Below, piece by piece: positions 14,531-47,162 of a stretch of DNA of 64,000 bases (positions are counted from its first letter, which is position 1; each line of letters opens with the position of its first letter). The notes under the pieces are model-generated. The model was not told the origin of the DNA. It ran no database searches and worked only from the letters and a program-made list of their open reading frames with translations. The translations under genes were made by a program, and so were the position numbers. The stretch covers positions 110,341 through 174,340 of the forward strand of contig MNCI01000270.1 of assembly GCA_015680685.1 (NCBI GenBank). The letters run 5' to 3'. This stretch comes from Gnetum montanum (lineage: Eukaryota; Plantae; Gnetophyta).

Positions 14531-16635
14531 AATCAATACCAATACTACCTCTATTGATGGACAACCCTACTCGCTATTCCAGATCTCCTCCCTCCAACTC
14601 AGTCATCAGGGAGAGGGCCACCAATGCTAATCATTCTCAACCCTTAATCCCTTTTGTATTTTTGTTTTACAGATTTTTATTCTACACACTTTTTCATATT
14701 TACTTATTTTTTTTTACACCATCGTTACCATTTTTACTATTTCTTTGTTTGTTTGATTTACTTTCGTTTGTCATACAATAAGTGCTCATGCTGGTAGATT
14801 GTCCTATAATGGTGTTGATTGTTAATGTTTGGTTTTTAGCTTTGATTTTTAATCTTGATACTAAGATATGGTTCTTTTGATAAAATAGGCAATGAGTTCA
14901 CGACATCCATTCCTCCATTTAACTCTACGGTCCCCCTTGTCTTGGAAATGTACTATCCTTTTTTCTAAATAAACTTATTAATGAATTGGTGACTTGATAC
15001 TCTTCAAACTAGGGAAGGACTCAATGGTTGAAAAGGGTGTGACTTCAAGGGGATTTGACACACTTGTGCTAGCTATTCTCTTGGGTACTTGGATGTTTTT
15101 CATGGGTTTTCTGCCATTTCTCTATTGACCAACTATTAGGAAGTTGAATGAATCTAAATAAGTCTTTGCATGGTGTGGTTCTCACAGAAAAAAAACTAGT
15201 GGGAATTCAAAGCACACCCCTTAGACGTAATAAAGAAACATGGGCTACAAACATTGGTTATGACACTAGAAAGACATGTTACCCATGCCTGAAGGTTCCC
15301 TCTAAGTAAGGCCCTTTCTCGCTTCCTGCTTCCCTATCTTTCTCTCCTTAGAATGGTGGTGACTAGATTGATGCATTCTTGTTGCTTCATGAGGATGGGT
15401 TGGTCAAATGTATTGATGCGAGGTCACTAGTTATGGTTGGTGAGTTTGGACTTGGGATGAATTTTATTCAATCACCGTAACCATCTAATACACAAGGGAC
15501 TCTACACAACCTTACTCTTGGGATTCCATTCCATTTTCTCCTCTCCTTCCATACTGTTGGCACATTTGGCCATTTCATGGAACATAGATATGAGATGATT
15601 GAAACCTTCAAAATATTTCAATAGAACTATTGAAATGGCAAGATGTAGGTTTCAAAGGTATTGATTCTTGTCACTCGCTAAAAAAGATTGGATGAGATGG
15701 GATGCATTTATTCTCCCTAATTTTAGTTCTTCAGATTATCAATCGGACTGATACTTAGCATGGGAAACAAGCATATGATTTTGGTTCTCAAAATTCACTA
15801 GGTTGGAACTTTTATGTGGCTCAATTTTGTAGAATTCTTTGATCATTACTTATCCTTACTGAAGATGTTCACCTTCTTCCAACACATCTCTTTTGTGGAT
15901 ATTGAATTGACAAGCAAGGAATCTTTAGTGTTAGAAATACTTTTAGGAATTGATCATTTGGATACAAACGGTTTATTTTCATTGCCTTCAGAAAATTGCT
16001 TAAAGATTGATAAAAGAAAAATATCCTTATTGTTGATGTTTGAAAAGATTCATTGCAAGGAATATGAAACTTGAAAATCGTTTGAGGATGATTTTGAAAT
16101 AGCATGACAAAATGTTCAGAGTAATTATAAAGAGGGAATTGAGAAGTGGGATGCTACATATAGCATGCTCCTTTATGGTAGAAAATATTTTGAGGAGTTT
16201 GCCGATAAAGTACAAATATATTTTCCATATTGATAGTTCAGAGATTGTCATGAACAAATGTTTGTATGAACTATCCCATCAGAATATTGGTGAAAGTTTT
16301 CAATATCTGTGTGTCTTCATTTACATCTGCATGAAACATCTTGCCTGCTAAGGTTACTGAAGAGTTTGAACATAATGTGGCGTTGGATTCCAAAATGTAT
16401 GTCTAGAGTTGTGAAAATTTGTGGAGCAATGAAACCGTATATACTTTCCCTGCCCAACGCTAACATTTCTAGTGGAGAATGCACACGTTAAAGAAACTAA
16501 CGGTTGCAAAATTGCGGAGGGCATGGAGGTTTCTAGGTTTGAATTTCTACAGGGCAGTGGGGCTCGCTTGCCGATCTGGCTTTGGTTGGACTCATGGACA
16601 CTATTTGCAATGCCGTGTGCATACGTAGGTAAATC

Positions 16636-16735
16636 TGGTACTGCTACCAGCACCATGGTTCAATTCGCGGGCCACGCAGCTGCAACACAAACCTGCGTTG
16701 CCCTTTTTGCAATGATGGATTCATGGAGGAATGCG
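16636..16735 (+). pseudogene. Captured N-terminal zinc-ribbon of a RING1-like (RNF126-type) E3 ligase
   Basis: Frame not shown in the ORF track reads WYCYQHHGSIRGPRSCNTNLRCPFCNDGFMEE, resembling the WCxxC...CPxCxxGFxEE pattern (second Cys is His here). Confidence 0.6.
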
Positions 16736-17030
16736 AATCAGAGATTCATAGCCATGGCAGGAACCCTAGCAACTCTAGCGATGACTCGGATGAAGAATTC
16801 ATGGCAGACATGATGTATTCCATATGAAGGTATCTGGCCAAACATTACGAAGTGCCTATGTCATCGACGATTATTTTCCAATGGGTTCGCCATTCAACAT
16901 GCATGCCCATGATGATGAGTTCCCATTCAGGCTTCGCAGGCTGAGGCATGGGCATTTCAATTTCGGTGCGGATTTCTTCATCAAGCAGCTGCAATTTCCT
17001 GCAACAAGATGCAACGACGGATTCTCAGCA

Positions 17031-17240
17031 TTGAATGCAAATTTGAGACGATACAACTATGAGAAGTCGATTCCCGTTCAGAAGTACGCAATTCCGATTT
17101 CCCTGGCTGGACAAGACCTTATGGCTTGCGTGCAGACCAGATCAGGGAAAATTGCCACGTTCTACTCTCTGATTATCACAGGGATTCAGTGCAGGCCCTG
17201 CCTTGCTCCTTCCTATGGTGCCCACAAAGCATTTTCGCGT
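17031..17240 (+). pseudogene. Captured DEAD-box helicase fragment, DDX3/DED1 (plant RH11/37/52) type
   Basis: LNANLRRYNYEKSIPVQKYAIPISLAGQDLMACVQTRSGKIATF = Q motif plus degenerate motif I. Confidence 0.88.
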
Positions 17241-17906
17241 CTCCTAAACCCACATCTAGCTGCCCTAGTCTAACAGCGGTCGTTCCTGGGCAAACAGGCG
17301 AAATGGTGACAAAAACCATGACAAGAGACGATTGGCTCGGCTTGGTTTCAAAAGACTACGCGCTTTGGAATACGATCAGTACCTCTTTCAGGAATACATT
17401 CAAAGAATATACAACTGCACTGATCTTCAGGGTTTCTGGTTTTCAACGTCATGTGGGAGATGCTAAGAGAAATTAATCCATGGACTACGGCAAAAACAGA
17501 AAAATCTAAGCTGGGATTCACTGTGTTTTTAGCAGGAATTATTTTAGCAAAATTTTTGAATCAATATGTGGAGGTCCCACCGTTTATGTCGGAATTGTTA
17601 TTGGATATAACTACCATGGCATAGCATTTCGTTTTAATACATTTTGCAGGTTCAAATCCTTCAACTCACAGATGATTTGGACAAATAGAGGTTGATGGCA
17701 GGTAGGAAGAAAATCATGGATCCCAAGCATTAGAAATATGGACAAATATTACACACTTACATATATATTTATATATTAACCCATCCATGTATGCATCAAC
17801 TCCATGGTTATTATCTCTACTACTATGATGTAAATAACAATAAAATATTTTATGATTTAAAAAGGGAATTTGTGCAACAATTTTTCAAAGTCCCATGTGA
17901 ATTGAA

Positions 17907-18115
17907 CACTTGTCAATTGAAATGGTGGTTATAACCACCACCAAGGCCACTTGTCAACTACAACTTTTTTATCTCCACAATAACCACTTGTCAACTAAAT
18001 GGGCCACTTGTTAACTAAACGGGACACTTGTCAACTACAACTTTTTTATCTCCATGGTGACCACTTGGCAACTGAATGAAGACACTTGGCCACTAAATAG
18101 GACACTTGTCAACTG
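17907..18115 (+). repeat. Array of ~8 CACTTGTCAACT-like motifs upstream of the G1 TATA box
   Basis: Copies near 17907, 17947, 17984, 18004, 18024, 18061, 18082, 18102; CTATAAAAA at ~18253. Confidence 0.8.
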
Positions 18116-19261
18116 CAGCTTTTTTATCTCTATGGTGGTTGCAACCACCCAAAAGTTTTGTAACTTACCTAACTTTTTGGGCAAGTAATTAACTTCCTTA
18201 CTTGGGAGAAAAGTTAGCTAAGATATTTTAGAATGTAACTATCTTATGAACCCTATAAAAAGGATTTAGGGGTAAGAGATCAGAGACACTCAATATCACA
18301 AGGACTTTTGGAAGGACTACAAGCTCTCACTTGGGGGAGGACTTAGAGACACACTTGTAGTCACACATTGTGAAAGATTGCTTGTAAGATGGCTTGCTAA
18401 AGAAAAGATTGCAACCTCTTTGTCATAGTCCTGTGAGTTATGTTTTATTTTTATTTTGTCTAAATTTTTTAGCTAGTGGTTTAGATAGTATCATCTTTGG
18501 CAAGTAATTTTGGGATTTTTAGATTGCTCTTATTGTTCTTGTTGCATAATTTGAAAATTTTTATTAAAATTTTGCCATAGAAGCACTAGTGTTTGAAAGC
18601 CTTCAGAGCATTTTAGTAGTGAATTTGGTTATTGTGCAATGTATAAGAATTGCTATTGAGATCGTTGTAAGAGAGCCTCTGCTTGTAGTTATGTCGTTGA
18701 ACCATTCAATAGTCAAGAGGGTTTAGAAAATCTTTGGTATTTTGATGGGACCAGAATAGCTTCTTTTTATCTTTAAAGTGAATCTCCATGATATTTCAAT
18801 CAAAAATTGTCAAGTCTTTTGAAGGTTCTGTTAAATGCAATTGTTGACATCCATTATCTAGCCAAAATGGAGTCTCGTACGTGATAGTTTACGCAGTAAT
18901 TTTTGGTANNNNNNNNNNNNNNNNNNNNNNNNNNNNNNNNNNNNNNNNNNNNNNNNNNNNNNNNNNNNNNNNNNNNNNNNNNNNNNNNNNNNNNNNNNNN
19001 NNNNNNNNNNNNNNNNNNNNNNNNNNNNNNNNNNNNNNNNCCGCCACAGCACACACACATACTCACATTAACTATTGAGTTTATTTGGAGGTATCTGGGC
19101 CTTGGTGTTGCCAGAGACCAGCAAGCACCTAAATCCTGTTTGAGGACACTCGTTGGCGGTTGCGTCCCAAATGGTCACCAACACATACTTCTTCCCATAT
19201 TCCACCTCATTGCCAATTTTATGATTAGTCTATGTCTTGGTTAACACATTGTTAGTCTTTG

Positions 19262-20600
19262 TGTTGGCAACCATTTGGGATGCAATCCCCAACGAGTGTC
19301 CTTGAACAGGATTTAGGTGCTTGCTGGTCTCTGGCAACACCAAGGCCCAGATACCTCCAAATAGACTCAGTAGTTAATGTGAGTATGTGTGTGTGCTATC
19401 ATGAAAAATGAAACGGTTGGGTTGTGTGTAAAATTTGAAATGAGTTATCTTAAAGAGATTCAACCAACTTTGCAAAGTACTGTGAGTTGTCAAGAGTTCC
19501 TATTTTGTTCAATTGCCTAGTCTATGCGGTCCTTATAATACCTACTTGTAACAAATAAAGTTTTGCAAAAACATTTGAGCACAACTTTGCAAATCTACTT
19601 CTAATTTTCCCCAGAGANNNNNNNNNNNNNNNNNNNNNNNNNNNNNNNNNNNNNNNNNNNNNNNNNNNNNNNNNNNNNNNNNNNNNNNNNNNNNNNNNNN
19701 NNNNNNNNNNNNNNNNNNNNNNNNNNNNNNNNNNNNNNNNNNNNNNNNNNNNNNNNNNNNNNNNNNNNNNNNNNNNNNNNNNNNNNNNNNNNNNNNNNNN
19801 NNNNNNNNNNNNNNNNNNNNNNNNNNNNNNNNNNNNNNNNNNNNNNNNNNNNNNNNNNNNNNNNNNNNNNNNNNNNNNNNNNNNNNNNNNNNNNNNNNNN
19901 NNNNNNNNNNNNNNNNNNNNNNNNNNNNNNNNNNNNNNNNNNNNNNNNNNNNNNNNNNNNNNNNNNNNACTAGATACAGAGGCTCTCTTACAACAATCTC
20001 AATAGCGGTTCTTATACATTGCACAATAATAAAATTCACTACTAAAATGCTCTTAAGGCTTTCAAACAAAAGCTCTTCTATGAAAAAATTTTAATAGAAA
20101 TTTTCTATCATGCTACAAGAACAATAAGAGCAATCTAAAAATCCCAAAATTATTTGCCAAGCATGATACTATCTAAACCACTAGCTAAATAATTTAAACA
20201 AAATAAAAAATAAACATAACTCATAGGACTATGACAAAGAGGCTAAAGTGTTGTCTTTAACAAGTTATCTTACAAGTAATCTTTCACAATGTCTTCTTTA
20301 CAAATGCTCTTCCCCCAAGCCACCAAGACCCAGAGCGAGACCCCCCTCAGAGACCTCTTTCCTTCCTACCCTTGAAGCCCTTTTATAGTAACCTCAAGGT
20401 AGTTACAATCATCATGAGAAGGTGAGATAAGTTACAAACATTATGGGTGGTTATAACCACCATAGAGATAAAAAAGTTGCAGTTGACAAGTGTTCCATTT
20501 AGTTTCCTAGTGGTCACCATGGAGATTAAAAAAGTTGTAGTTGACAAGTGGCCCTTGTAGTGTTTATAACCATCATGTCAATTGAGAGGCTACAATTGTC
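19262..20600 (-). mobile_element. G2: inverted copy of the giant-LTR 3' block (5' end not located; possible cargo ~20830-21800)
   Basis: 19262-19397 is the reverse complement of 19048-19183 with a few substitutions; 19969-20590 mirrors ~17910-18680. Confidence 0.85.
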
Positions 20601-22437
20601 ATGAAATTACAACATTTATAGGAAATTTAAAATGAAGCCAAGTATCTAGTGGCTATATTCACCATAGGGTTAATGTTTATAGGTGATGAATATCTTGTAG
20701 TTGCAACCATCATGATAGACTAGGGAGCCATGGAGGACTCATGTTTTGTTTCTACATGTCTCATTATAGTATGGCCATAAATATATTCATATTTCAATTT
20801 TATGACCCCAAACAACCATAGTAACTTATCCAAATTGGTACCCATTTATCTATATTATTATTTTTCTTATGTCACTCCCAATTTATGTGCAAATTCTCTA
20901 GATCATGAGGATGTTTGGCTTTTTGGAATAATAAAACCGTAGTCAAGATGTTTGCAGCATATTTTTTACAAATTATTGCGTGAGCTTGTTTCATCAAGAG
21001 TAATGTTTGAACTGAAACTGGGATAATGAGCAACGCCAACTCCCTCATACGCAAATATTTCAAATTAACAGGAAATTCACGGCTGTTAATCATCAAGCTT
21101 CTGACTTGCAGCAAAGAAATGAAGAATTCCGCCATTTGCTAGTGTGGTATTGTAATTCATCCTTGCTTCGGTAGTTGCAAATGTCGAGTCACTGGTGTCG
21201 TCTAGATACACCAAAGCTCTGTTTTTAGTGACAGTTATTCAGTATCAAAAGGTTTGAAACTCTTCTGAGCATCCTGGCAATTTTTACATGAACTGTACGT
21301 GCCCTACACCAGTGGAGCCAAAGGCGCAATGGAAATGATTACAACCATCGTTCGCAGTGAGACCTCCATGTGTGCTCAGCGTTCACTGAATGTTTGGGAC
21401 CAGATTCTTGGCAAGATGCCCTTGTCTACCATGATTTAAGATTTCCGTCAGCTACGGTTATGCACTACATTTTTCTTGGAGTTTATTTCTCTACCATGCC
21501 CTGGTGCTCTGTCAAATACGAGCTAGAAACACTATTGCATTTTTGCCCTTTTATGTGAAGACTCCACTCTCTATATACTGTGGATTATTGAAGGAGATCT
21601 TCTTTTTCTTTTGTAGGTTCCAGGAGCAAATGATAACTCTGGTTTAGGATTCTAACCGCCTGAAATATTTGCCCTAGATTTACCTAGGGCTTCCTACGTT
21701 TTTCTTTCTAAATTCATTTTATTCAATTTGTGAATCAGGGACAGCTGTTGTATGATTTGGGTGCTAATATTGGCAAGATTTTGATATATTCTTGATGCTT
21801 GTCTTGCTGTTTTTCTTCTAAAACTGTTGCTCATAACCTATTCTTAGTTGTAGGGGCCCTGTCACAAATTTTTCCATTCAATTACCTATCTCACCCCTAC
21901 ACCTTGGGTAGTTATTAGTTAAAAACCTCTAACCTAGTATCTGCCATACCCATAACCCAGCCAATGCACTTATATCAAAGCAAGGTATTAATTGCATTAT
22001 GGCTTATATATCCTTGCTAATTTGTGACTGTGTTGTATGTGCAGATGGCGATTACATGAACAATGGATTGGGATAGGAGGAAGTACTCGAGACGGACTGG
22101 AGCTGGAGCATTTACATAATGAACAAGTTTGGTCATGTGGCTATGGATAAACAACGGAATGCACATTTTTGACATGGGTAGCAATGCACCTTATTTTCTT
22201 TTTTTTCTCTCTCTTTCTTTTCAAGTTGTCAAATGAGGATCTCGATGTTATCTATGTACAGTGTTCACCACAATGGGCATGAACACCAATGTTGTAATAT
22301 GTTTGTTGATCTGTTCACTAGGCACTTTGAGTCTATTATTCCATGTCACTGTTAGTTCTCATTTAGTCAATAATCCCATACCTTCCCAATATTTTGTAAG
22401 GAACTCGAGGACGAGTTTTCATTTAGTCGTAGGGGTA

Positions 22438-23288
22438 TGATGATCTGCGATATCAGGGTCACGATATCACATCTACGATATTAGGTATACGATATTAGGG
22501 CCTTCTAAGCGATATCGGACATCTGATATTGAGGCCTATCTTGTCACCTATAAATAAGAGGCGGGCGTACTTGGTTTGGCAATAGTTAGTTGATTAGTCT
22601 TAGTCCCTTACCTGAACTCTTGCCTTTTTCCCTTCTCAGAGTTAGAATTATTTCTGAGTGCTTGTAGTAGGAGTCATAAAGCAAATGGATCCTTATTCGA
22701 GCATTGTGTACTTGAGCACACATTGTGGCTGGAAATAAAGACAAACTTTGTTATAAACCTTGCAACATTCAAAATAGCTTATTTAATGTTATTTATAGTT
22801 ATTTAATGCTTTCCTTAGTTAATTAATGTTCTCTCTCTCTCATCTTGTTAGCTCTCCCAAGTAAGCACATTTAGTACGACCACATCGAGCATGCGTGGAA
22901 CACTTGGTAACCTAGTAACGATTAGCATTTGATAATTCTAGTAGTGTTGCACTGGTTCAGGATGTGTACGACAAGTGGGAACAGATGCTGGTGTTAGGAC
23001 TAGTTAGAGTATAGTAGATTAGTTAAATTGAATTAGTTATTTAATTAGTTCACTTCTCCGTTTGTAGCACTAGGGCATAAAACATTAGAAAATATATAAA
23101 AATCATATACCTCAAGTTTACTTAACCATACAATCGTGCTATACAAGTAAGCTTGGGAAGACAATGATTGACTAACCTGCCTAGGTTCTGTAAACACGCA
23201 TAAGCACCTAGTCCTTGAAATTTGACCAAATCATGCATGTACGCTCGTATTCATATGGTTGAGCATAGGGATACCTCGTCGCTCATCA
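22438..23288 (+). repeat. A1 3' LTR
   Basis: TGATGA...CTCATCA, preceded by AACTCGAGGACGAGTTTTCATTTAGTCGTAGGGGTA. Confidence 0.92.
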
Positions 23289-24942
23289 CATATTGAAGCT
23301 TTCAAATAGAGTAAAAGATAAGCAATTAAAGACACTTCCAAATGCAAAGAAAGGAAGTAGATATTTGATCATCAAGAATGACTTCATTGATGCTTGGTTG
23401 AAGGTTATTACAAATTCCAGATATCAATTTTCAAGTGTGATTTGTAACATTACACTCGAGAAAAAAAAACATGAGAACAAGAGTTTTCACTTTCAGGTAA
23501 AGGACATTGAGAAGAAACAATTCTCATATGTTTAAGATGAGTGTTGAAAATTCCTTGAGGAATAAGACACCATAACAAATATAAATTTTTGAAAAGATAG
23601 GAGCTCTCCAAATATCTTTCATATTTCATTCCTTTCTTACTGTTGGTACATTTTAGCCATTTCATGGAGTAGGATTTATGGGCTTGTGACACTAAAAGAG
23701 TTAGATGAAATACTGGTTGGTAACAACAACATCAAGAGGAAATTCCATATGGCATCCAGAAAACTCAATAGAGATAGTAGTTACCTCCATAACAACATCT
23801 AGCTAGAAACTTTAATGGGTGGCTCTCCTGAGTTTCTTGCATCACTTACATTTTCTAATAATGAAATGGAGTCTACAACAAAGCTAATGTTGACATTCAA
23901 AACAATTATTTGGTGTTGTTTCCCTACAACCACAACAAATTATCATTACTAATAAATCATATTTTTCGGAAACTAAGATGTCTTAGCCCTGATGTTGAAT
24001 CTCATGCTATGTTATTGAATATCTGATATTGTGGGATGTATGCTTGCTTATAAATACAGTACTTGGGCGCATGATTCAAATAACTTTCATTCCACCCTTA
24101 GGTAGAGTCTTGCAATTTCGTTTCATAGTTTTAGCAATAAAGTGAATGCCTGTAGTGTGGTGTTGAGCAGTTGTATAGAATCTTTATTCAAGTGAAGTGT
24201 ATTTGGGCATAGTTGATGTCTGAAAATGAAGATTGAGATTGTTTTTCATCATTGCAGCATCCACTTCGTTTTACTGTTTTACTAAGCATAGTTTTTACTA
24301 TTTTCTTAGTTTAATCATTTACATTTCCAAGTATTTTACTTTCTTGTTCATTAGTAAAGTGGAATGAATACGACTAGTTTTGAGCATTTAAGTGTAATCG
24401 TTTGGTAATTCCTATAGTATTATTGCTTAGTTTGCCCAGTAGCATAACACTTGGTAACCTAGTAATGGTTATATGAGCCCAAGACATGTATGATAAGCTA
24501 GGACCAGATGCTCATCACTCTAAGCTAGAGTAGATTTACATTACCTTCATTACTTAGATTTAGTATTAAATTTCATTCTCAATTATGTTTAATTCTAGGA
24601 GTAATTAGGGCCTAACAACATTAATTATCATATGCCTCACTTTGGACTAAACCATATGTGACAAAGCTACCACTAGTCTAAGTAGGAAGAGAGTGTCCTG
24701 CGATTAATACTTAACAATCTAGATGCCACAACTAGTCGCATCCATGAAATTTGATTGGATTATGCGTGAATGCTTGTGGTTTGTATGGTTGGATGTAGGG
24801 TAGCCTACCGCTCATCATTGGCATTGTTGCCAAGGATGCTGCTAGTTATTTAGATTAATTATATTATAAATGATTACTGTAAAAGTATTAACAATTTATC
24901 TTTTAGAAAATATTAATATTTTAAGTCACACCCATTAAAACC

Positions 24943-27000
24943 ATGTCTTCTTCACATAGGACCAATAATGCATTGTATGATGAAAACACTCATAGGAAAA
25001 ATGGTAGGTTCTATACTGAAGAGAATTGGAGTGAACAACCTCAAGCAAGAGTTTCATATGCTCATTTCGACTCGTACTACATGCAAGGACTACGTTCAAT
25101 TGGTATAAACAATTCTAGAGGAGATGGAATAAGTCTTAGATCAAGAAGGACCTCAAGGTCTAGGACCTCCTGTAAACCTAGAAAAGATAAGTCAAGGCAT
25201 CATGGGGAATACTATAGGAGCCATGGTGATTCTTCCAATTCCTCATCTTCCTCTTTCTCTTCAATGTCTAGTTCTAATGGAGATGAACATAGGTCTAGAG
25301 ATAGAGCTTCACTATGGGGTCAACAAAAAGATAGAAACTGAACCCAAAGGCAAAATCAAAGACATCAAAATGAGCATAGAAGAGATCATTATAATCATAC
25401 AAGTAGAAATAGAAATTATCTCCATGACATGTCTGATGATGGTAAATCCTTGTTGGCTACTAAGGGCATGACGTATATAATAGAGGCAATTAGAATACCC
25501 CATGGGCACTAAAGGGAAAGTTGCATCAAAAGGCTTGATATGAATAATATCCCTAAATTTGCGAGAGGCTATAATTCTAATCCACAACATCACTTTCAAG
25601 CATTTCATGATGCCTGCACCTTGCAAAACATCGAGAGTGGCAAAAGCTTAAGCTTTTTCTTAGGATACTAATAGACAAAGCTGAAGGTTGGCATAGATCG
25701 TTGGAACCAAATTTAATCCATTAATGGTCCACAATGCTGGAAATCTCCAACGAGAAATACCAAACCTATACGAGAGTGTCCAACCTGAGAAAACAAATCC
25801 AAGGATGGAAGTAGGAAAAAAATGAATCCTTGGATGTGGCCTTGGTTAGATACTATTTGCTACTACATAGATGTCCAGGTTATGATTTCTATCAAAAAGA
25901 GTAGCTTTTCCACATCATAGATGGGCTTCATAACCAAACAAGAGAGACCCTTGGGATTTATGTCCAAGGTTGGTTTTTCAAATTAAAAGCCCATTAGATG
26001 CAAAGGCTAATCAGATAGGTGGAAAAAAAAGAAGGAGAGCTATGTAAATGAGAGAATCTAGAGGAATATAACTAGGATCCAACACTTCAAAAGAAAGGGG
26101 TCCATATCTATGATGAGAAAAAAGAGGTAGCTCTTGATCAGGTGATTTCACAACAAACCTTGCTAATATAAAATTCTTTTGCTAAGCTTAAAGCAAGGAT
26201 AGATAAGATGTGGGAGTTGATGAATGAAAAATTCACAACCTACGTGAAAACCATAGAGGAGAAGGTGGCACAAAACAAATCAAGTAATCAAAACAAGAAG
26301 AGGAAAAAGAACAAAGAAGCAGGTAGGAACACTTACTAGCAAAAAGGAAAAATAGTTGTAGTAGAAGAGGCTATAGACTCAACCATGGAAGAGGATGATG
26401 GATGTGACATTTGCTAATATGACCATTCAAAGGGCTATTACCCAGTTATGTTACATCTACAAGATTTTGGGGCTTTGGCTTTGAATCCCAAGTTCATACA
26501 AAAGTAAATGCCTAGGAAATTACCTTACTCACAAGGTAATTATAGACAATCCTACCACCAATCATACTATTTCTGTGGGATGTCTTATCAGCCTCAACAC
26601 TACTATCAACTGTAGTGGCAAAACCCATAGTCAATGGGGATGCCATCAACAAATTAGCAATACCCTGATTACCAACCAGACCCCTATGACTTCTATGTTC
26701 AACAACCTATTTCTCTAGATGGTCCTACTTCCTTGACCTCAAATCACTACTACCACTCTTTCAAATATCATCAACTCACAACATCACCTTTGGGATCACC
26801 ATCTCAAACCTCTTATGCTCTGTGACATCCTCAATATTCTCATACTTCCCTCCACCATATGTCACCACCACCAACAAAGGGAGAATTAGCACCACAACAT
26901 CAATGAAAGAATGTCATTTGTGCTATGAACATACAAGTAAATGATAATGTTAGTAGATCTTAGCTAAAGTCTCAAAAATGTCCTTTCTTTAGGACAATTT
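24943..27000 (+). pseudogene. A2 gag remnant
   Basis: Collinear with A1 gag, e.g. CAAGCATTTCATGATGCCTGCACCTTGCAAAACAT (~25597) vs CAAGCATTTGATGATGCATGTGCCTTGCAAAACAT (~11483). Confidence 0.8.
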
Positions 27001-34200: not shown

Positions 34201-34402
34201 CCAAATCTCTTTATAATAGCCATTTATAGGTTTTTATATTCAGCCCAACCCTTTCAACATTCACAATAGCAAACACATACTCACGTTTAACCGTTGAGTC
34301 TATTTGGGTGTATCTGGGCCTTGGTGTTGCCAGAGACTAGCAAGCACCTAAACCGTGTTCAAGGACACTCATTGGTGGTCGCATCCTAAATGATCACCAA
34401 CA
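31243..34402 (+). mobile_element. Giant solo-LTR-like unit G4 (3.16 kb) inserted in the A2 3' LTR
   Basis: TGTTGTCACATTTAGGCCATT...GATCACCAACA; TSD CATCT/CATCC, where the A2 5' LTR has a single 5-mer; CTATAAAAA at ~33212. Confidence 0.88.
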
Positions 34403-34789
34403 CATCCTTACTTAGATTTAGGATTAATTTTTATTATCAATTATGATAATTGCTAGGAGTAATTAGGGCCTAACAACATAATTATCATATGTCTCACTTT
34501 GGACTACAGCATATGTGACAAAGCTACCACTAGTCCAAGTGGGAAGATAGTGTCCTACGATCAATGCTTAATAATTTAGATGCCACAACTAGTCCCATTC
34601 ATGGAATTCAACCGAATTATGCATGAATGTTTGTGATTCATATGGTTGGACGTAGGGGTAGCTATCGCCCATCAATCACCACTCAATTGTATCCAATAGA
34701 GTTCACAAGAAGTGTGTTTTTCATTCTCCAGCAATGACGTATTTTCAAAATTATCTAAAAGTGAAGGAACAAATAAATGATATTGGAAA

Positions 34790-35385
34790 TGAAAACTTGC
34801 TTTGGACAAAGATTGCTCAAGGAGAGTGGGAGATGACACCATTGGTTGCCCTGCCATGTCTAGGCAGATAAGAATTATTTAGATGTTACTTAGAAACCTT
34901 TTGGTTGGAGTAAATTATCTACACTGTCATGGACTAGCACATATGGAGCTATGCTTGAAAATTGTTCATATAAGCTATGTAAATAGACATATCTAGGTTG
35001 GAATAGTTGGAAACTTATCTAATTTGTATTGTAAGGATTTCAAAGATAGTACACATGATAATAAAGTTGATAGACAGAAATGTATGATGGCATTTGATGT
35101 TAGGTGTGTGGGTTTCATGATGTCTAAACTCGTATTACTAGAGCTTATGATACCTTCTGTGTTTAGAAAGCTCAATATTTACAAGTGAAGAAAAACAACC
35201 TATCATGTTTATGTGAATATTTGTTGCTAATCATTAGGTAGTATTCTCCGACTGGAAGCATTGATGTGTAGTTGGTTGGATGCCTTTCAACATCCATTTC
35301 TATGTAATCCTCACTGGTTTATGGAACCATAAGTGGACATCATTAGATGTGGTCTTAGATCAATAGTTGTACACATAGTTGAGGT
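34790..35385 (+). pseudogene. Captured kinase-domain fragment of ORG1/FBN11 (PAP14)-like protein
   Basis: LALDKDCSRRVGDDTIGCPAMSRQIRII*MLLRNLLVGVNYLHCHGLAHMEL...MMAFDVRCVGFMMSKLVL...WLDAFQHPFLC...VDIIRCGL. Confidence 0.85.
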
Positions 35386-35394
35386 CCATAATAA

Positions 35395-35510
35395 TGGGAA
35401 ATAATTGTAGGTCGTTAATACTATGTTGGTGAGAGAAGACCATTTTTGTTTCATACCAATAGGAGGTGGGAAGACGTTATGTTACTAGATTCCTACATTT
35501 ACAAAGGTCG
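35395..35510 (+). pseudogene. Captured RecQ helicase fragment (motif 0/I)
   Basis: GK*L*VVNTMLVREDHFCFIPIGGGKTLCY*IP resembles RecQ GRDCFxLMPTGGGKSLCYQIP. Confidence 0.8.
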
Positions 35511-35749
35511 TAGATTATAATTAGAATCATTATTTCAATTTGCAAATAAGAGAAGATTAAAAAATATTATTTTCATCTAGAAAGAAAAACTAATAGATAT
35601 GCAAGATTGACTTACTGGAAACTTGTGTTTTCAAATTATGTGATGGTGTTTTTAATGAAATCAGATGAAATATCTGGGTTAAGAAATTTTTTATGACCTT
35701 CAACCACTGCTACGTTTGGACAGTTCAGAGATTTAGGTGGAAATAACTC

Positions 35750-35938
35750 TTAATGTTGGTGCTAATATTGTTCAAAAGGATTTGTTATCTCCTAATAAAT
35801 TAATAGCTCATAATGCTAGTGGTTGCAGTGAAAAGAATTTTATTTAGTGATTGGAAGACAGGATACAATGCGATGATAGATGCATATGAGAATCTCATGA
35901 ATGCAGGAATCATTGATCCTATGATAATCCCTAGGTGT
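35750..35938 (+). pseudogene. Captured chaperonin-60 alpha C-terminal fragment (part 1)
   Basis: VGANIVQKDLLSPNKLIAHNA.../SDWKTGYNAMIDAYENLMNAGIIDPMIIPRC. Confidence 0.88.
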
Positions 35939-38900
35939 TGTTGATACCAACATGTCCCCTGCTATCGCACGAGGCCATGAATTTTTAGTTTTAATACCAT
36001 GAAAATGTCAAGATCCATCACATATCATCATCCGCATAGTTTATACTAGTATTTCAAAGGCCTTCCTTGGAAAGATAAACGTGAGAACCTAGTGGTTGTT
36101 GGCAAAAAACCTACTTTGATAATCTAAAAATGGTTTGTAACATACTTAAGAAGGAAAACAATATTTCTTCAAGTTTTCAGGGTCTAATTTACTGGTATAG
36201 GAAGCATTATTGGTAATAATTGCTAAATCAACAATTCCAAATTTTGAATTGATCTAAATTAATCAATTAATTAATAAATTAGTTACACCTTGCAAACTTA
36301 TATGTTTTATTCCCATAATAAAAAACTCTTAGAAAATACGATGGTGGTGTTGTGTAGACAATAGCAAGTAGTGGGCATTTAGTAGGGACGTGTAATGTGG
36401 GCAACGTGGGTAATCGATGAGGTGGATGTAACGTATTTTGGTGGATGCAACTGACATGGCAAGGTGGTGAACATGCAGTAATGGTAGAGGGGGACATAAT
36501 TGATGGCATGGTGGAGCAAGTGGATAATGTGGACATTTAAACTCATCAATAGGTAGTGGCTATAAAACTAGTGATAGAGTGTAGCAAAAGGGATATCGAC
36601 CTCCCCCCTTTGTTGCTAGCATATGCAAATATGAAATTGGCAAGGTTTTCTCTCTCTCTCTCTCTAGTGTTGGCAAGAGCACGATAGAGTGATCAACTGA
36701 AGAAGACAAAGGGCATAGAGACGTTGTAAGCAATAGCATCTGTGACAATTCCTAGTGGCTATTGCTTGCATGTGCATTAGTAGGCACGAGCAATGTTGTA
36801 GGTGGCAGGTAATAACCAACCGAAGGAAAGACATCTCCTAGGGCCTCTCTCTCTGGATCTCTCAAGGCACGTGAACTATCTATCCAATGGCAACAGTGCG
36901 TTGGTGAGTAATGATTGCGAGGTAGTAGTAGTAGTGCATTGGCAAGCGATGACAAACAAGTGGCGGTGGTGGTCAACAACTATAGGTGACGTATGGCAAA
37001 GGCTTGTGCATTAGCAATGGTAGTGGTGGTGCACAGTGTCAGTAGCAATGCAAGAGGAGTGACTCGTGCATCAGTAGGTGTGTCAATGGCAACACAGGGC
37101 AATGTGTGATCAGTAGGATCTATTGCAGCAGTTAATGACATGTTGCAGCATGCATGGAATGGTGCATCATGATGCGTAATCAGTAGTGTCTGCTCCAATA
37201 GTTAATGACACGTTGCAACGTGTGGGACATGGCACATGCATTAGCAGGCACGTCAATGGTGGCGCATGATGGTCTACAATCGACAACATCTATTGTAGGC
37301 ATTAGGTTGTGTGTGACAAGCATTGTAGGTAGCACGCAGTAGGTGCAAACGATGGCGACTATGATAGTACATCAAAGACGTGAACAGTAAGCGACCCTAG
37401 GGGTTCTAAGCCTCTCTCTCCTCATGGACATAACCAACAGCAGGGGTAGCATGTCCCTGCGCAAAGGGATTTTTATCCTTATGATAGTAGGATTTTTTGC
37501 CTAGTAGCAACAATGGCGATGCAAAGTGACCACAACAGCAGTAGGTGGTGGTTGTGCACAATGATGAAAGGGGAGGATCCCCATTTAACCGTAATGTCAC
37601 ATAACTCTCTCCAGCTAAGACTATTCTTAGTTTTCCATACTCATATGGGAGGCACCCTAGGCGATAGTCTCCTTAAAGAAGTTTTTTCAGATGTTGGTGC
37701 ATCCAAAATTTATGCATCAACACCTTTTTGGTGCTAGAAGGAGCACTTGTTTCATTTTCTCATCATGTTTCGGAACCTATTTTTTTTGAATGTTTTTGCT
37801 AAAAATCTCTATTTTTTGACCCTTGTTTTGAAAAATCTTTGTTCCTTACTTCTTTATAGCCCCTATTCCTTAAAAAAATTCATTCTACTTTATTTTTTAA
37901 GAATTTTGAGCTCTGTATTTTCTGATTTCAAAAATTCTATTTTTGAAAATTTTCGTTTCTTGTTACTGGAGTCTCATCGTCCATTTCTAATCCTATTTTC
38001 AAATTTATCTTGTAAACTCTCATTTTCAAGTCCTATTTTCAAATTTGTACTCTAGTGGTCCTTACCTTAGCTCCAAATTTGATGAGGTGATTTACATCAT
38101 TTTTCTTTTAATTTAACTTTCTAAAAATCTGCATTTTCTGTTTTATTTGCAATTTTAGCTTTCCTTTTAAAAATTAAAATTAAAAAATATAGTATTTAAA
38201 TATTTCTCTATTTTCTTTAATTTTTAGAAGTTGTTAGTATTTTACATTTCCTGTTATTTTTCATTCTATGAGTGAATCTTCATCTCAATAAAGAGCTTCT
38301 ACTCCTGCCCATAATCAACCAGCTACTCATCATTTCATTTTAAAAAAACAATGAGCCTCACCTTTCCCAAGTCCTATCCCTAGATGAACTCGAACTAGGA
38401 TGGTAGCCAATCAACCTGAGTTTCCTTAATGAGCAACCTCTTTAACTTCACCAACTATCATAATATTCCAAAGTGACTTCAAAACATAAATTTGTTCTTC
38501 GATCCCACAACCCCTACTAGTGATGACTGCCAACATAGACAATGTTTTGAAACCTTCTTAGGAATCCATAACATTATCTAAAATGACATAGCATGTAGGG
38601 TATTTGTGACAACTTTCAGGAGAAAATCCACCTAATGGTTTTTGATGCTCCCAAATGCCTCTATCGACTCATGGAAAGAGTTTAAAAATAAGTTCCTACT
38701 TTAGTTTGATAGGTTCACTAGCCTTGCCATAGCATCAAGCAATTTCACAAGCTTAAGGAAAATACCTAGGGAAAATGTCTGAGATTACAATCTAAGATTC
38801 CTCCATCAACTTGCTTATGTGCCAAGTGAGATGCATCTACAATCTAGTGGCATCCTCAATTTTTAACTATCTACCATTAACCCATTCTTTTCCTATGGCA

Positions 38901-42243: not shown

Positions 42244-42279
<36 letters not shown>

Positions 42280-43049: not shown

Positions 43050-43450
43050 TTATGCCAAACTATCCTGTGTAGATTAATGTAATAATTTATGATTGGGATA
43101 TTGTTTGTAAAGCACAATTCTTGGATTAGTTAATATCACTGTTGAAAAGGAAGGTCATGTTAAAGTTGAGTGGTATGCATTGGATAGCTCTTTAGGCTAG
43201 GTCTATATTCAAACAAGTACAATATATGTTTCGATTAACCCTTCTCTACCAACAATATTTGAGTTGTTACTAGAAGAAGTTGTTAAGCACCATTATTCAT
43301 GCATGTTGGAGAGATCTTTTCTATACCATAGTCACATGTATGTGTCTAGATAGAATATATGCTTTCATTCAAATGTTTTTGTAAAGTAGCTAAAGGTGGT
43401 ACTACTATTTGAAGATATTAAAGAGATCAAGAAAAAGTTAGCATGACATT
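43050..43450 (+). pseudogene. Captured C2 plus GRAM fragment of a BAGP1-like protein
   Basis: PV*INVIIYDWDIVCK..ILGLVNITVEKEG...WYALDSSLG*V and [40 protein letters not shown]. Confidence 0.88.
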
Positions 43451-43967
43451 TATTTTACCTAGAATTACAATGATTCTAACAATTTTGACCAATGATGCAT
43501 GTATATGCTGGTTAAATGATGATGTAGCTATTGATGAAGGTGCCTACATCAATGAAGGCTTCTTGGTGTGAAATTAAAGGACATGCTTGATAGTCTACAA
43601 GATTTTTCATCTATTGGTTTTTGGTGGTTTCTTGGTCACTGCTCGCTCAAAGATCTGTGAGTTACATGGATTCCTCATTAACACATGTTGGAAATGGAGC
43701 CACTAGTGCTCACAACATAGTGCTACCAGTCTCCACCAGTGAGTGGGGAGCTACTGCCACTACAAGTCCATGAATAGAAACATGTGTGACCTATATGCAT
43801 GAACATAGAGCATCCAAGAATCATCTCCAATGATGATGATAATGGATGCAAAGCTGATGCAACAAAGTAATGAACAAACATGCTAAATGATGACTAGAGA
43901 GCCTCCACTAGAAAAGTCAAGGAGCAATAGTACAATTTTTCCATTTGGCTATGGTGCAAGAGGATGT

Positions 43968-46009
43968 TGTTGATGCATAAATTTTGGACACATCAACACT
44001 TGAAAAACTTGTTTAGGAAGACTATAGCCTAGGGTGCCTCCTATGTGGATATAGAATCCAAGAATAGTCTTTGCTAGTAGGGCAATGCGACATATAAAGA
44101 TGCTAGTAAGTTAAACAATTTTAACAAGGAAATATAAAAGGTATTTCAAGATAATTTTGACTGAAAGACAACCATTTTCTTTTAAATTTTCAACAATAAA
44201 ACTTATGTATCAATAAAACATGAAATTAAAGCAGAAAATAGCTAATAGCTTAGATTGGATTAATTTGAGTTTTGAAGTAAAATGAGTTTTGTGTTTACTC
44301 CACAACACAAACATCATAGTTCAATTATAGAAATAGAAAATGATAGAATGAAATGATGACTTAGCTTAAAATGAGCACAAATGGAATGACATCTAGTGCA
44401 ACCTTGCCTACTAGTGCTTACAAGAAGCACACCTCTTCTAACAAGCTTGCCACCTCTGACCGTTAAATCTACTCGTTGCTCTACCTCGAACTACCTCTGG
44501 GAGAGCCATTGAATAAGCAACAAAAGTAAGAGAGAACCTTAGGATTTTCCACCATGACTTCACTTAGAGAAAACCCCCACCACCATAGCTAGTTTTCTTT
44601 CTTCTTCATCATAGCTAGCTTTTTGCTTCCTCTATTGTAGCTAGCTTTCTACATTTTCTATGTCCTCTTTCCTTGCCAAGGAATTTATAAGGACTAGTCT
44701 AGCACATGAGGAGCCACCACGTGTGCATAATGCCCATGGCAATTACTACCCATGCGTAGTGTTCATTGTAACGTCCACTACCACCAACTGCACATAACGT
44801 CCATTGTAACATCCATCGATCACGTGATAAAGAAATGTGTAGCTCCCACCATCCATGTGCAAGTAATGGTTGCAGGAATGTGTAGTGGTGAAAATGAGAT
44901 GGAACCACACCCCAGCTCCTGCTCAATGGGTGGCTACATGGACTTGGCACAGCAGAAACATGCTTCTGCAAAAATATGCAACAACAGGAGAGAATTTTAT
45001 CGGAAACAGAAACTTTTGTTTCCATGGGAGAATAAAAACTGCAATGCCATCTCATGTTCTATTTCCATTGGAACCTATCTTGTTTCCATGGGAGAATAAA
45101 AACTGCAGAAGTGTCCTCTACCCACCACACTGCATATAAAAAGCCACCTCACAACTGCTCGCATCACCACCATTTTCATTGGAGTCACAAAGGAGGCTTC
45201 AGAAGATTCCCTACAAAATTTCGTTACAATTCTTGGCATCTCTGCCATGTCAAAATTGACCAAGCATGCCTCTATTCATGGTGATGATGGACAAGGAAAG
45301 GTGTAGATTTCTTGCAACTTCCATTTCTATTCTGTATCATTTGTAGATAATCCATAAATGGATCATGTGATTTTAAATTGTGTAGGGAAATAGAAATTGC
45401 AACTAAACTTTCATTGCTATGGTAGGTAATGTTTGCATGTATGTGGAAGGTGGGAAAACTTGCTAAGGAAAAGTGGTAGGGATGACCACCATAAATGGGT
45501 AGCACTGGTTAGAAACCAAGAAACTCCCTGGAAGCTAAATAATCGATAATTGTCAGTAGGGAGATGGTACCATAGCTGGTATTTGAGAATATCAAATTTC
45601 AATCACTTCACACCCTAACTCCTTTGTTTTTTTTGTTAAATTTTTGTTTTATTTTTTTTATTAATAAGGGATAATGATAGGTTGCATAAGTGATAATCTC
45701 ATTGGCTTGTTAGGTAAAGGTTGGTACATAAAGTCACACTGAAGTTATCATTAAACTCCTTTGTAAGATCTTTAAATTCTCTAAGTCTAACTATGATTGT
45801 CAAACCAAAGAATGACTATAGATATACTTTATGATGTATGGCCAACATGATAATTATTGAGAAATAGAGCAATTTCTAAATTGTGACTCAAACTTGCAAC
45901 CAATTTCATTACAAGATAATGAGCTAAAACCATAGGATTTTTAACTATCAATGGACTAAAACTTATTTAATCAAGGCCCCGTGCTACAATCGGAGTGTTG
46001 GCACCAACA
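43968..46009 (-). mobile_element. Solo LTR T2, related to the T1 LTR
   Basis: 43968-44095 is the reverse complement of the T1 LTR 3' end; ~45940-46009 resembles the reverse complement of its 5' end; flanks GATGT/AATAC do not form a TSD. Confidence 0.78.
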
Positions 46010-47162
46010 AATACAAAGTAGGATTTTCTAACTACATAGGTAAAAAAATACAGTGGTGATTTTGGACTTGTATGTTAGATGCTTTGTTTTAAAGAAATTT
46101 TTTTTATGAAAAGAAATGTATGGAATGATTATTTAACATCCTATATAAATGGGACATTTTTCTAATTTACCTTAAATTCTTATAGAAGTTATAATGGGAC
46201 ATTTGTCTAATTTACCTTAAATTTGTATAGTAATTATAACTTTCCTTGGTGATTATAATCAAAACCTCATAATGTTTGTAATCCACCCTAGGTTTTTATG
46301 ATGATTGTAACTACCCTAAAGTTACTATAAAAAGAACTTCAAGGGTAGAATCGTTCGGTTGTGGGTTGGGGGGGTTGAGAAGGGGGTATGTATGCGCGCA
46401 CGCATGGTAATTAATAGAAGAAAAATTGAAGTTGTAAAGCATGGTTTGCCAAAGGCATTAATTTAGTTGCTTTGTTTTAATCCTATGAGTTCTTTTTTTC
46501 TCATTTTGTCTTTAGTTGCTTAGCTAATGGTTTAGATAGTATCATGCTTGGCATTTAATTTTGAGATTTTCTAATTGCTTTTATAGCTCTATTTTTTGTG
46601 CAATACTAGACTTCTATTAGGTTTGCCATATAAGAGCTTATGTTGTCTTAGAAAAGCATCTTGAGCAATTTAATAGCAACGTCTTTATGAAATTTCCTAT
46701 TTGAGTCTAGAGTATCTAGAAAAATCTTTGATACTTTGAGATGACTTGAAATAGCTTCAATTTTTAAGGTCTTTTCCTTGATGTTTCAATCTTAAAATTG
46801 TTAAATCATTTTTGATAGCTCTATTATTTTCAATTCTTAATAACTATTAACTAGTCAAATAAAAGCTTGTACTTTTCATTTACAAAGCATTTTGGTAGTT
46901 TAATAAGAGTGTCTTTTATGAAATTGGTTGTTGAGCTGAGAGGGTTTGGACAATTTGTAATACTTAGATTGAATTGGAATAACTTTATTATGAAGTGTTT
47001 CCTCATGTTCAATTTATCTCACTTAAATGTTTGAGATGTCACAAAAATTTGCTTTCTTTTCTTTTTTCTTTCTAAAATCCATTGAATCTCGCTCTATTTC
47101 TAGTTTTCTTGTGGATCTTTATCTTTTGGGGAAATTAGGAGTAGATTTATCCTAAACCCCTA

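Follow-up and report, generated by a model that had tools for sequence, protein, structure and literature searches.

LTR-like units with shared ends and differing, in part apparently gene-derived, interiors in a Gnetum montanum contig

Nested elements of the locus

The window (the whole stretch of 64,000 nucleotides that was analysed) carries units of one kind, here termed G units, two of which are complete, together with two LTR retrotransposons of another family, E1 and E2 (Table 1). E1 contains both G1, nested in its internal region, and G2. Its LTRs (TGATGAG..CTCATCA, 9923-10309 and 22438-23288) are 86% alike and are bordered by a perfect TSD, CATAT, at 9918-9922 and 23289-23293; it also has a PBS-like TTGGTGCC and reading frames for gag, PR and INT, and its rve domain occupies 13611-13976. 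E2 interrupts the unit behind the 23641 tip after 309 bp and itself bears G4 in its 3' LTR. The two E2 LTRs (23950-24817 versus 30644-31241 plus 34405-34674) are 85.6% identical, the TSD is ATTAC/ATCAC (ATTAC at 23945-23949), a PPT-like GTGGGGGTA is present and the gag region is homologous to that of E1.

The assembled length of G1 is 3629 bp, which becomes about 3.9 kb when its gap is sized from G4. The N runs of G1 (18909-19040) and G2 (19618-19968) occupy the same stretch of a high-copy 3' block, and their flanks are colinear with G4 in matching orientation; judged by the length of G4, the real gaps would be about 436-445 bp, against 132 and 351 as assembled. The TSD still matches across the gap of G1. 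G2, read on the minus strand, terminates in CCAACA at 19262; over its final 136 bp it is 93% identical to G1, and its interior runs on rightwards from the 3' block, while a 5' tip for it was looked for in the window and not found.

Table 1. Positions of the features in the window
Feature	Position	Strand	Evidence or remark
E1, LTR retrotransposon of E2 family	9923..23288	+	LTRs, TSD, coding frames
G1, complete solo-LTR-like unit	15555..19183	+	tip TGTTGGCACATTT, end GGTCACCAACA, TSD
G1 cargo 1, zinc ribbon piece, N-terminal RING E3 ligase type (weak match)	16639..16731	+	PF14369 Zn_ribbon_19
G1 cargo 2, DDX3/Ded1/Vasa-type DEAD-box piece	17019..17216	+	phmmer against PDB
G1 3' block	17894..19183	+	BLAST to G2 and G4, alignment, repeat search
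G1 tandem 16/57-nt CACTTGTCAAC motifs	17900-18156		repeat search; upstream of TATA box
G1 TATA box	18253-18260	+	followed by conserved stretch to CCAACA
G2, 3' block of minus-strand copy	19262..20650	-	CCAACA end, BLAST, alignment
G2 TATA box	20381-20388	-	alignment
Third G-type 5' tip and first 309 bp	23641..23949	+	~29-nt match to G1 tip
E2, complete but degenerate LTR retrotransposon, other family than G	23950..34674	+	LTR pair, TSD
G4, complete solo-LTR-like unit, 3160 bp	31243..34402	+	tip, TSD, empty site
G4 interior, no recognised identity	31272-32970	+	
G4 3' block	32970-34402	+	TATA box at 33212
Train of putative host gene pieces, continuing behind E2	34680..35941	+	tblastn, homology searches
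FBN11/PAP14 piece, 597 bp	34793-35389	+	tblastn, E 4e-62
RecQ motif I piece	35411-35485	+	E 0.009
CPN60 C-terminal piece	35737-35941	+	match at 35825-35938, E 2e-4
Gypsy pol fragments	39763-41300		PR/RH/INT
Possible C2 domain end and GRAM domain piece	43073..43443	+	motifs by eye in translation only
Truncated G-type 3' block	46150..47147	+	68% identical to G4 positions 2036-2829
TATA box of truncated block	46325-46332	+	aligned in register

Shared ends and differing interiors

A scan of the window returned three exact 5' tips, all on the plus strand, at 15555, 23641 and 31243 (about 0.008 expected by chance according to our own estimate), in line with the start motif that the original prediction had assigned to G1, G4 and a third unit, ‘G3’. 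Likeness among the tips extends for some 27-29 nt from the first base. The units end in TGTTG..CCAACA, with a 6-bp terminal inverted repeat TGTTGG/CCAACA in G1 and G4. At the other side, a 3' block of 1.3-1.45 kb is common to all four copies (G1, G2, G4 and the truncated block at 46150-47147), 68-93% alike between copies by BLAST. BLAST and alignment place the TATA box in register in each of them, and CTATAAAA falls in one column of the alignment of the 3' blocks across all four. Approximately 150-350 bp upstream of the TATA box are likewise common to the copies; the stretch from the box to CCAACA, presumably R and U5, spans about 1.15 kb. The block was predicted to reach CCAACA in G1, G2 and G4, and this end was located in all three; the truncated copy is without its last ~330 bp and hence without CCAACA or a TSD. 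Upstream of the block the copies are unrelated, as had been anticipated: each of the four interiors in the window is different, and no BLAST match was found between those of G1 and G4.

The 5-bp TSDs claimed for G1 and G4 were both recovered, perfect in the former (CATAC at 15550-15554 and 19184-19188) and matching at four of five positions in the latter (CATCT at 31238-31242, CATCC at 34403-34407). An empty counterpart of the G4 site exists within the window in the paralogous 5' LTR of E2, at 24547/24548, and read contigs of organisms A and C join 31237-31241 straight to 34408-34411. With their TG..CA ends, TSDs, empty site and nesting in LTR retrotransposons, G1 and G4 behave as products of an LTR integrase. 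The label ‘LTR’ is applied because of termini, TSDs and copy number; no full-length element with two G-type LTRs, and no PBS or PPT, was found within the window.

In public DNA runs, summed contig depth was 200-800 on the G4 interior versus 1e5-6e5 on its 3' block, the approximately 1000-fold rise lying at 33074-33318. The interior is itself a lower-copy repeat, represented by contigs that are 85-90% alike. One contig of organism C spans the G4 tip and the start of the interior and then continues leftwards for about 300 nt, a hint that this part of G4 may occur a second time, next to a different flank.

Pieces of host genes in the interiors

The interiors of G1 and of the unit behind the 23641 tip are supported as holding sense fragments of several host genes, set back to back, as judged from homology searches. 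For G1, the DDX3-like part of the predicted cargo stood firm (E ~1e-7): the piece covers the Q motif and motif I (E 8e-8 to 1e-6, phmmer, PDB), and its best matches, Vasa-like, Ded1 and DDX3X, align at the same residues. The RING-type zinc ribbon fared less well, as the match to profile positions 4-34 of 35 is weak (E 0.01) and lies under the Pfam gathering score; the translation does show the CxxC..CPFC pattern. Searches of the G2 and G4 interiors gave no identifiable gene piece.

Behind E2, the FBN11/PAP14 piece matches residues 209-433 (225 residues) of the tblastn query P0001, which has Pkinase and PAP_fibrillin domains, in one frame and colinear with the transcript. In Arabidopsis, FBN11 is split into no fewer than 10 exons (PMC8145590), and the piece appears colinear with a spliced mRNA over its whole 225 residues. 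The RecQ piece, for which 12 of 12 matches were RecQ helicases, follows the FBN11 piece at a distance of 21 bp. No poly(A) runs were seen beside the FBN11, RecQ and CPN60 pieces in the translations. All three were retained from the cargo first listed for ‘G3’, except that the best match of the CPN60 piece is a beta-type plastid Cpn60 and not the alpha type; for the possible C2-GRAM piece, recognised by eye in the translation, searches of Pfam, PDB and the Atlas returned nothing. Sense orientation to the unit, another part of the original prediction, applies to five of the five tool-supported pieces, a bias that is to be read over only two independent trains, the antisense strand having been screened with less power.

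The claim that ‘G3’ is a single unit was not confirmed, since the 23.5 kb between the 23641 tip and the truncated 3' block contain E2 with G4, PR/RH/INT fragments of gypsy type and a pair of 405-bp repeats, and a 3' end is missing. One giant LTR reaching from 23641 to beyond 47147 is nevertheless a serious possibility, although we are inclined somewhat against it. About 5.8 kb would be left once E2 (10.7 kb) and a possible second nested element, at 35939-42926, are taken out; tip and block lie in the right order and in like orientation, gene pieces resume 147 bp past the second 405-bp repeat, as if a 7-kb block had been inserted into the train, and the 405-bp repeats are 86% alike, comparable to the LTR pairs of E1 and E2. 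Against this, any TSD is lost together with the 3' end, a TSD for the 35939-42926 block was looked for and not found, and, were that block not an insertion, the remaining 12.8 kb would far exceed known LTR sizes. Moreover, with four G-type copies crowded into 32 kb, two unrelated fragments in tandem are plausible.

Origin of the patchworks and relation to known systems

We regard it as fairly probable that G1 and G4 represent solo LTRs from a single, very abundant group of LTR retrotransposons and that the patchworks in their distal U3 arose, most likely, by reverse transcriptase template switching. In this best explanation, G2 and the two ‘G3’ fragments would be partial copies of the same kind, the first ~29 nt would be the U3 attachment site, and the shared parts would be those needed for integration, transcription and strand transfer. 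The distal U3 would be free to vary and, in at least two copies, would have become a patchwork with short, sense, putatively intron-less pieces of unrelated host genes. While copying the 3' U3 of the element RNA in minus-strand synthesis, reverse transcriptase may switch to cellular RNAs, or to RNAs of other transposons, packaged alongside and then return; the patchwork would pass to daughter copies, because the 3' U3 is the template for both LTRs, and would persist in solo LTRs. Since the cargo precedes the LTR promoter, it would be passive DNA in a solo LTR rather than an expressed chimeric gene. This explanation is favoured by the colinearity of FBN11, the abutting pieces, the lack of visible poly(A) and the sense orientation, the last being expected if RNA templates are copied in one direction. 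An R plus U5 of ~1.15 kb would be unusually long, and this counts against it.

Alternatively, the units could be ordinary solo LTRs with a normally divergent U3, and the gene pieces could be later arrivals in single old copies, left there as filler DNA or cDNA when double-strand breaks were repaired, or as small retrocopies, without ever having moved together with the LTR. The cargo of G1 is known from G1 alone and could have arrived after insertion; the copies are old, with 3' blocks divergent enough to have left ample time, and a genome-wide gymnosperm survey reports vast numbers of dispersed gene fragments in these genomes (PMC13477047). We nonetheless hold this to be unlikely, as in two independent copies a multi-gene train occupies an equivalent position, 0.4-1.1 kb inward of the tip and still upstream of the promoter, with all pieces sense, with no poly(A) run visible beside them in the translations and with so short a spacer between FBN11 and RecQ; the lower-copy repeat in G4, with its suggested second copy elsewhere, points the same way.

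Less likely still is a guest transposon, i.e. a Helitron, a Pack-MULE/Pack-CACTA or a cargo-bearing LTR fragment, inserted in the U3 and owning the mosaic. Multi-gene mosaics are known best from these classes, the ends of Helitrons easily escape the eye, and the ‘G3’ region does hold nested E2, gypsy fragments and the repeat pair. However, a search for inverted repeats of at least 14 nt found none in the G1 interior, hence no TIR pair around its cargo, and the apparent colinearity of FBN11 with spliced mRNA contrasts with Pack-type elements and Helitrons, which capture at the DNA level and usually keep introns. Like G units, Pack-MULEs and Helitrons have fixed ends round mosaics of several host genes. 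Their DNA-level captures often retain introns, and MULEs have 9-10-bp TSDs and long TIRs, Helitrons no TSD and a hairpin end, unlike the 5-bp TSD and TG..CA ends of G units. That the units are non-autonomous elements of another class with chance TG..CA ends is very improbable: no partner LTR, PBS, PPT or coding region of the G family was found in the window, but a 5-bp TSD combined with TGTTGG..CCAACA is the mark of an LTR-element integrase, the units are free of long TIRs and of internal terminal repeats, and a block that contains a TATA box preceded by tandem motifs is built as LTRs typically are.

The original suggestion that a family of this sort might be undescribed is too strong, given published template-switch capture, foreign DNA in LTRs and the gymnosperm survey. 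Capture of genes by such elements has been described before; what is unusual here is solely the location within the repeat. By template switching, with secondary retroposition, LTR retrotransposons capture partial mRNAs and multi-gene chimeras (PMC5131818). The maize Bs1, Drosophila and vertebrate cases resemble G units in their partial, intron-less sense pieces of several genes per chimera, and in a chimera carried and re-mobilised by an LTR element, as we read the G units (PMC5131818). There, the retrocopy takes the place of part of the coding region between the two LTRs and microsimilarity at junctions is the key evidence, whereas in G units the pieces lie inside the LTR, between U3 tip and promoter. 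The gymnosperm survey counts some 400,000 TE-borne exon fragments captured in each genome, hosted by Ty3/gypsy and Ty1/copia elements, and 13.7% of host TEs contain at least two; it is a bulk account whose accessible text neither places fragments within the LTR nor describes a family with fixed ends (PMC13477047).

Del/Tekay chromoviruses resemble G units in their very long, length-variable LTRs (1.1-4.4 kb), whose two ends carry short conserved attachment sites (PMC4029996). No gene cargo is reported for them (PMC4029996). Foreign sequence within LTRs is also found in BARE-2, Veju (PMC13317346) and Cassandra (10.1101/2023.07.14.548913). BARE-2, with Wis-2 sequence in its LTR, and the long Veju TRIMs passed it on within a subfamily (PMC13317346), yet that sequence is other transposon or unknown DNA from a single event, in contrast to the different host-gene mosaic of each G copy. 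Cassandra TRIMs share with G units host-derived sequence in the LTR, in their case 5S rDNA-derived and in both LTRs (10.1101/2023.07.14.548913); there a single capture, that of a Pol III promoter, is conserved and functional, while the pieces in G units are variable, decayed and apparently protein-coding in origin.

Termini, target duplications and setting of the units

The window consists of AT-rich plant DNA, nearly all of it nested retrotransposons, among which self-comparison and reading of the ends revealed four copies of one LTR-like repeat, designated G1 to G4 (Table). The terminal pairs were TGTTGG..CCAACA in G1 and TGTTGT..CCAACA in G4, and the 3' end of G2 likewise reads CCAACA, as had been claimed for these three copies. 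The 5' tip shared by G1, G3 and G4 was also confirmed: a degenerate 13-mer occurs exactly three times in the window, at 15555, 23641 and 31243, always on the plus strand (by our own estimate, about 0.008 exact matches are expected by chance), and the likeness among these tips extends over approximately 27-29 nt. The 5' tip of G2 was searched for in the window and was not found.

LTRs were recognised by TG..CA termini that form a short terminal inverted repeat (TIR), and by a target duplication (TSD) of 4-6 bp with an empty site. Both features of solo LTRs were seen here, with the TSDs predicted for G1 and G4 present and an empty site available for G4. The latter unit interrupts the 3' LTR of E2, a member of another retrotransposon family, of which the 5' LTR is uninterrupted at 24547/24548 and provides a paralogous empty site; moreover, public contigs from DNA runs of two organisms joined 31237-31241 straight to 34408-34411, skipping 3167-3173 bp. 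These observations establish G4 as a genuine insertion. The TSDs and flanks at positions 9918, 15550, 19257, 23636, 23945 and 31238 include several similar ones (CATAT, CATAC, CATCT, CTTAC, ATTAC), and the G1 tip and the 23641 tip are each preceded by 25 nt of pyrimidine-rich sequence, with a likeness of about 80%; this resemblance may reflect target preference or chance.

The hosts of the units, E1 and E2, are two members of that other family and have LTRs of the type TGATGAG..CTCATCA with GATATC-rich repeats before the TATA box (pairs about 86% alike). Their PBS-like sequence is TTGGTGCC, and G(T/A)GGGGTA resembles a PPT. Frames for gag, protease and integrase are present in E1, with neither reverse transcriptase nor RNase H between 13457 and 13572, and E2 retains gag-like sequence only. 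G1 was also considered as the 3' LTR of E1 and rejected, as no purine tract precedes 15555, G1 possesses its own perfect TSD and the true E1 3' LTR lies at 22438-23288.

Table. Positions and properties of the repeat units, their host elements and the gene pieces (window coordinates)
Feature	Position	Strand	Properties
G1	15555-19183	+	start TGTTGGCACATTT, end GGTCACCAACA; perfect 5-bp TSD CATAC/CATAC
G2	CCAACA end at 19262	-	tail to tail with G1
G4	31243-34402	+	flanks CATCT and CATCC; interrupts E2 3' LTR
Fourth 3' block (G3)	46150-47147		ends ~330 bp before expected terminus
E1	9923-23288		perfect TSD CATAT; contains G1 and G2
E2	23950-34674		TSD ATTAC/ATCAC; complete degenerate LTR retrotransposon
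Zn_ribbon_19 piece of G1		+	Pfam E 0.01, weak
DDX3/Ded1/Vasa piece of G1		+	Q motif and motif I; E ~1e-7
FBN11/PAP14 piece	34793-35389		matches kinase-plus-fibrillin protein, residues 209-433, one frame; 54% identity, E 4e-62
RecQ motif I piece	35411-35485		E 0.009; 12/12 matches RecQ helicases
CPN60 C-terminus piece	to 35941		E 2e-4; top match beta-type plastid Cpn60
Direct repeats of 405 bp	35939-36343 and 42534-42926		86% identical; start TGTTGATACC
Gypsy protease, RNase H-end and integrase fragments	39763-41300		by eye; bracketed by 405-bp repeats
Possible C2 domain end and GRAM domain	43073-43443		by eye in translation

Fixed 3' block and variable interiors

Homology among G1, G2 and G4 begins approximately 1.3-1.45 kb before the 3' end; the conserved stretch leading up to CCAACA measures about 1.15 kb. 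In alignment A4, CTATAAAA occupies one column in all four copies; the TATA box stands in register in each of them, with tandem CACTTGTCAAC-type motifs upstream. RNA reads showed no clear start or end. A loose RNA end at 33848 was rejected as a transcript boundary, its sequence being what we take to be the cDNA strand-switch primer, and a T-run at 33375 was discarded as evidence of poly(A) or transcription, since it fits internal priming.

Upstream of the 3' block, BLAST identified the tip as the only sequence common to G1 and G4, and the four interiors in the window all differ from one another, which bears out the proposed combination of a fixed 3' block with unrelated interiors. The same partition was visible in read depth, taken as the sum over contigs of two DNA runs mapped to 31000-34650: it amounted to 200-800 in the G4 interior, 1e4-3e4 in the TATA zone and 1e5-6e5 at 33318-34415. 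The step from the G4 interior to the 3' block is thus about 1000-fold, and the 3' block must be common to vastly more copies than any single interior. The G4 interior is itself still repeated, with contigs 85-90% alike, and one contig of organism C, which carries the tip together with the first part of the interior, extends about 300 nt further leftwards. This may point to a second copy of this part of G4 in another flank.

Both runs of N in the assembly fall within one stretch of the high-copy 3' block, and their flanks are colinear with G4 in equal orientation. Measured against G4, the true gap sizes are about 436-445 bp, versus 132 and 351 as assembled. The 577-bp contig between the gaps holds the G1 end, the G1 TSD and the G2 end, and the matching of the TSD across the gap supports the contig join; none of the reading frames depends on either gap. 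It should be mentioned that within G4, at 31536-31640, a 52-bp stretch is duplicated exactly around a single N at 31588. One of these copies is skipped by contigs of two DNA runs and by one RNA read, so this is an artefact of assembly joining.

Gene pieces and the extent of G3

Both gene pieces of G1 are located in a GC-richer stretch (0.45 vs 0.33). The second set of pieces follows the tip at 23641, which continues for 309 bp until E2 begins; with E2 excised, the tip is joined to 34680 and a train of gene pieces starts some 115 bp further on. The clean evidence for captured genes consists of G1, a bounded unit with two small pieces, and of this train, which is convincing although its tip is an orphan.

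Over residues 209-433, the FBN11 piece follows a Welwitschia transcript colinearly, uninterrupted and in one frame; this transcript is its best match, in keeping with, though no proof of, gymnosperm DNA. The passages cited from PMC8145590 give at least 10 exons for the approximately 670 residues of Arabidopsis FBN11, and the uninterrupted stretch of 225 residues therefore argues for a spliced template as the probable source. The RecQ piece follows after 21 bp, and no A-run beside either of the two was seen in translations. PDB searches with the FBN11 segment 34997-35185 and with the segment 35419-35517 returned no match. As a separate observation, P0002, an annotated angiosperm protein of 753 aa from Hibiscus syriacus, joins a LINE-type reverse transcriptase and zf-RVT to an FBN11/PAP14 stretch; it seems that a retroelement has captured this gene in a further lineage as well.

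The gene identities given in the original prediction stood in part: zinc-ribbon (weakly), DDX3, FBN11 and RecQ were supported by search tools, whereas the CPN60 piece, called alpha-type, matched the beta-type best, and the C2-GRAM-like stretch was read by eye only, with no match in Pfam, PDB search or Atlas. Its description of the G2 and G4 interiors as holding unidentified sequence agrees with our results. No gene piece was identified in the G4 interior, and the minus-strand frame of G2 at 20969-21425, which follows the sense strand of the unit and comprises about 150 codons with few stops, had no match in Pfam or PDB; this near-open frame resembles one more gene piece in decay. Pfam scanning of about 45 stop-free interior segments recovered the weak zinc-ribbon match only, the method being too insensitive for short decayed pieces.

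The giant unit proposed as G3 was upheld as to its 5' tip and its 3' block, but its 3' end is missing, and between the 23641 tip and the truncated block lie E2 with G4, the 405-bp repeat pair and gypsy fragments. The gene pieces halt at the first 405-bp repeat and restart 147 bp past the second one, as would fit a second nested element, leaving about 5.8 kb for G3. The left 405-bp copy begins within the last CPN60 codons and is flanked by a direct repeat, GGTGTTGT; a continuation of CPN60 past either 405-bp repeat was looked for and not found. However, neither a matching TSD nor a CA end was found for the block bracketed by these repeats, and the missing 3' end of G3 makes its own TSD uncheckable. 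A single G3 spanning this distance is a plausible reading that we place somewhat short of probable.

Class of the units, route of capture and neighbouring elements

The termini, TSDs, empty site, TATA-bearing conserved block, copy number and nesting habit point to solo LTRs. The window contained no full-length element with such units as both LTRs together with PBS and PPT. A pattern scan of metagenome and viral contigs with a conserved 30-mer of the 3' block gave no match, a scan with an 18-mer gave 24 matches, all due to chance and without BLAST similarity, and a search for proteins homologous to the 74-aa ORF of the block yielded nothing. Pack-MULEs and Pack-TIRs have long TIRs and TSDs of 9-10 bp (or 3 bp), whereas the units have a TIR of just 6 bp and a TSD of 5 bp; no inverted repeat of at least 14 nt was found within G1. 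Helitrons lack TSDs and possess 5'-TC..CTRR-3' ends with a 3' hairpin, whereas TSDs and TG..CA ends are present at the units. Were the pieces processed pseudogenes made by LINEs, each would be expected to end in 3' poly(A) and to be enclosed by a long TSD, whereas they are abutting internal CDS fragments with no A-run seen in the translations around FBN11 and RecQ. A minus-strand orientation of the units was dismissed as well, since both ends lack an adjoining PBS-like sequence, and the gene pieces, like the TATA box, all read on the plus strand.

The best explanation, which we consider probable, is that the units are solo LTRs of an abundant group whose variable distal U3 carries, in at least two copies, a patchwork with host-gene pieces, most likely produced by template switching. 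Preservation of the attachment sites, proximal promoter and R-U5, with the distal U3 free to vary, fits selection on an LTR, and the passages cited from PMC5131818 present partial gene pieces of unrelated origin that lie back to back, in sense and free of introns, as a signature of template switching. Reverse transcriptase would switch template onto co-packaged RNAs and, if the switches were placed in the 3' U3, the mosaic would be copied into both LTRs. A later decoration of single old copies appears unlikely as the origin of the pieces, and their delivery by a guest transposon still more so. More tentatively than the template-switching explanation itself, one hugely abundant gymnosperm LTR group might possess a permissive slot in the distal U3 in which spliced mRNAs were captured repeatedly, so that each sublineage would bear its own mosaic in both LTRs and each solo LTR would retain one.

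To regard this family as unprecedented was too strong a claim, since the cited parts of the literature already document that LTR retrotransposons of maize, rice and sorghum capture gene fragments (PMC2774510, PMC3726574), that Bs1 is a multi-gene chimera (PMC5131818) and that foreign sequence occurs within the LTRs of BARE-2 and Veju (PMC13317346) and Cassandra (10.1101/2023.07.14.548913), along with long LTRs of variable length whose attachment sites are conserved (PMC4029996). Those parts do not describe an abundant LTR group in which multi-gene mosaics that vary from copy to copy lie between U3 tip and promoter. Judged by the window alone, the units extend known LTR-mediated capture modestly and do not form a new class.

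For gymnosperms, the passages cited from PMC13477047 put the TE-borne exon fragments of each genome at about 400,000, with two or more fragments in 13.7% of host TEs. If the fragments occupied a fixed position within the LTR, their route of capture would become testable. Young intact copies would be expected to carry an identical mosaic in both LTRs, with microhomology at the junctions and almost always sense orientation. If general, capture would be placed in the LTR and not in the internal region, and this single route could explain much of the exon-fragment load of gymnosperm genomes, which is reported to run to hundreds of thousands. For annotation, such solo LTRs produce false gene or pseudogene calls, and they may feed small RNAs against the donor genes.

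Some further features of the locus were recorded. The first 5000 nt (1-5000, plus strand) contain a Ty1/copia element (gag-pre-integrase, rve, SH3_retrovirus, RVT_2), which has no relation to the G units. An inverted repeat of 8473-9296 versus 9441-9925 plus 23288-23625 is foldback-like, with arms of about 830 bp that are 74-75% alike, and the E1 insertion divides the right arm precisely. At 48330-49744, an array of about 150 degenerate copies of a CCCTAAA-type 7-mer (62% matches), in which C strongly outweighs G, looks like an interstitial telomere-like repeat.
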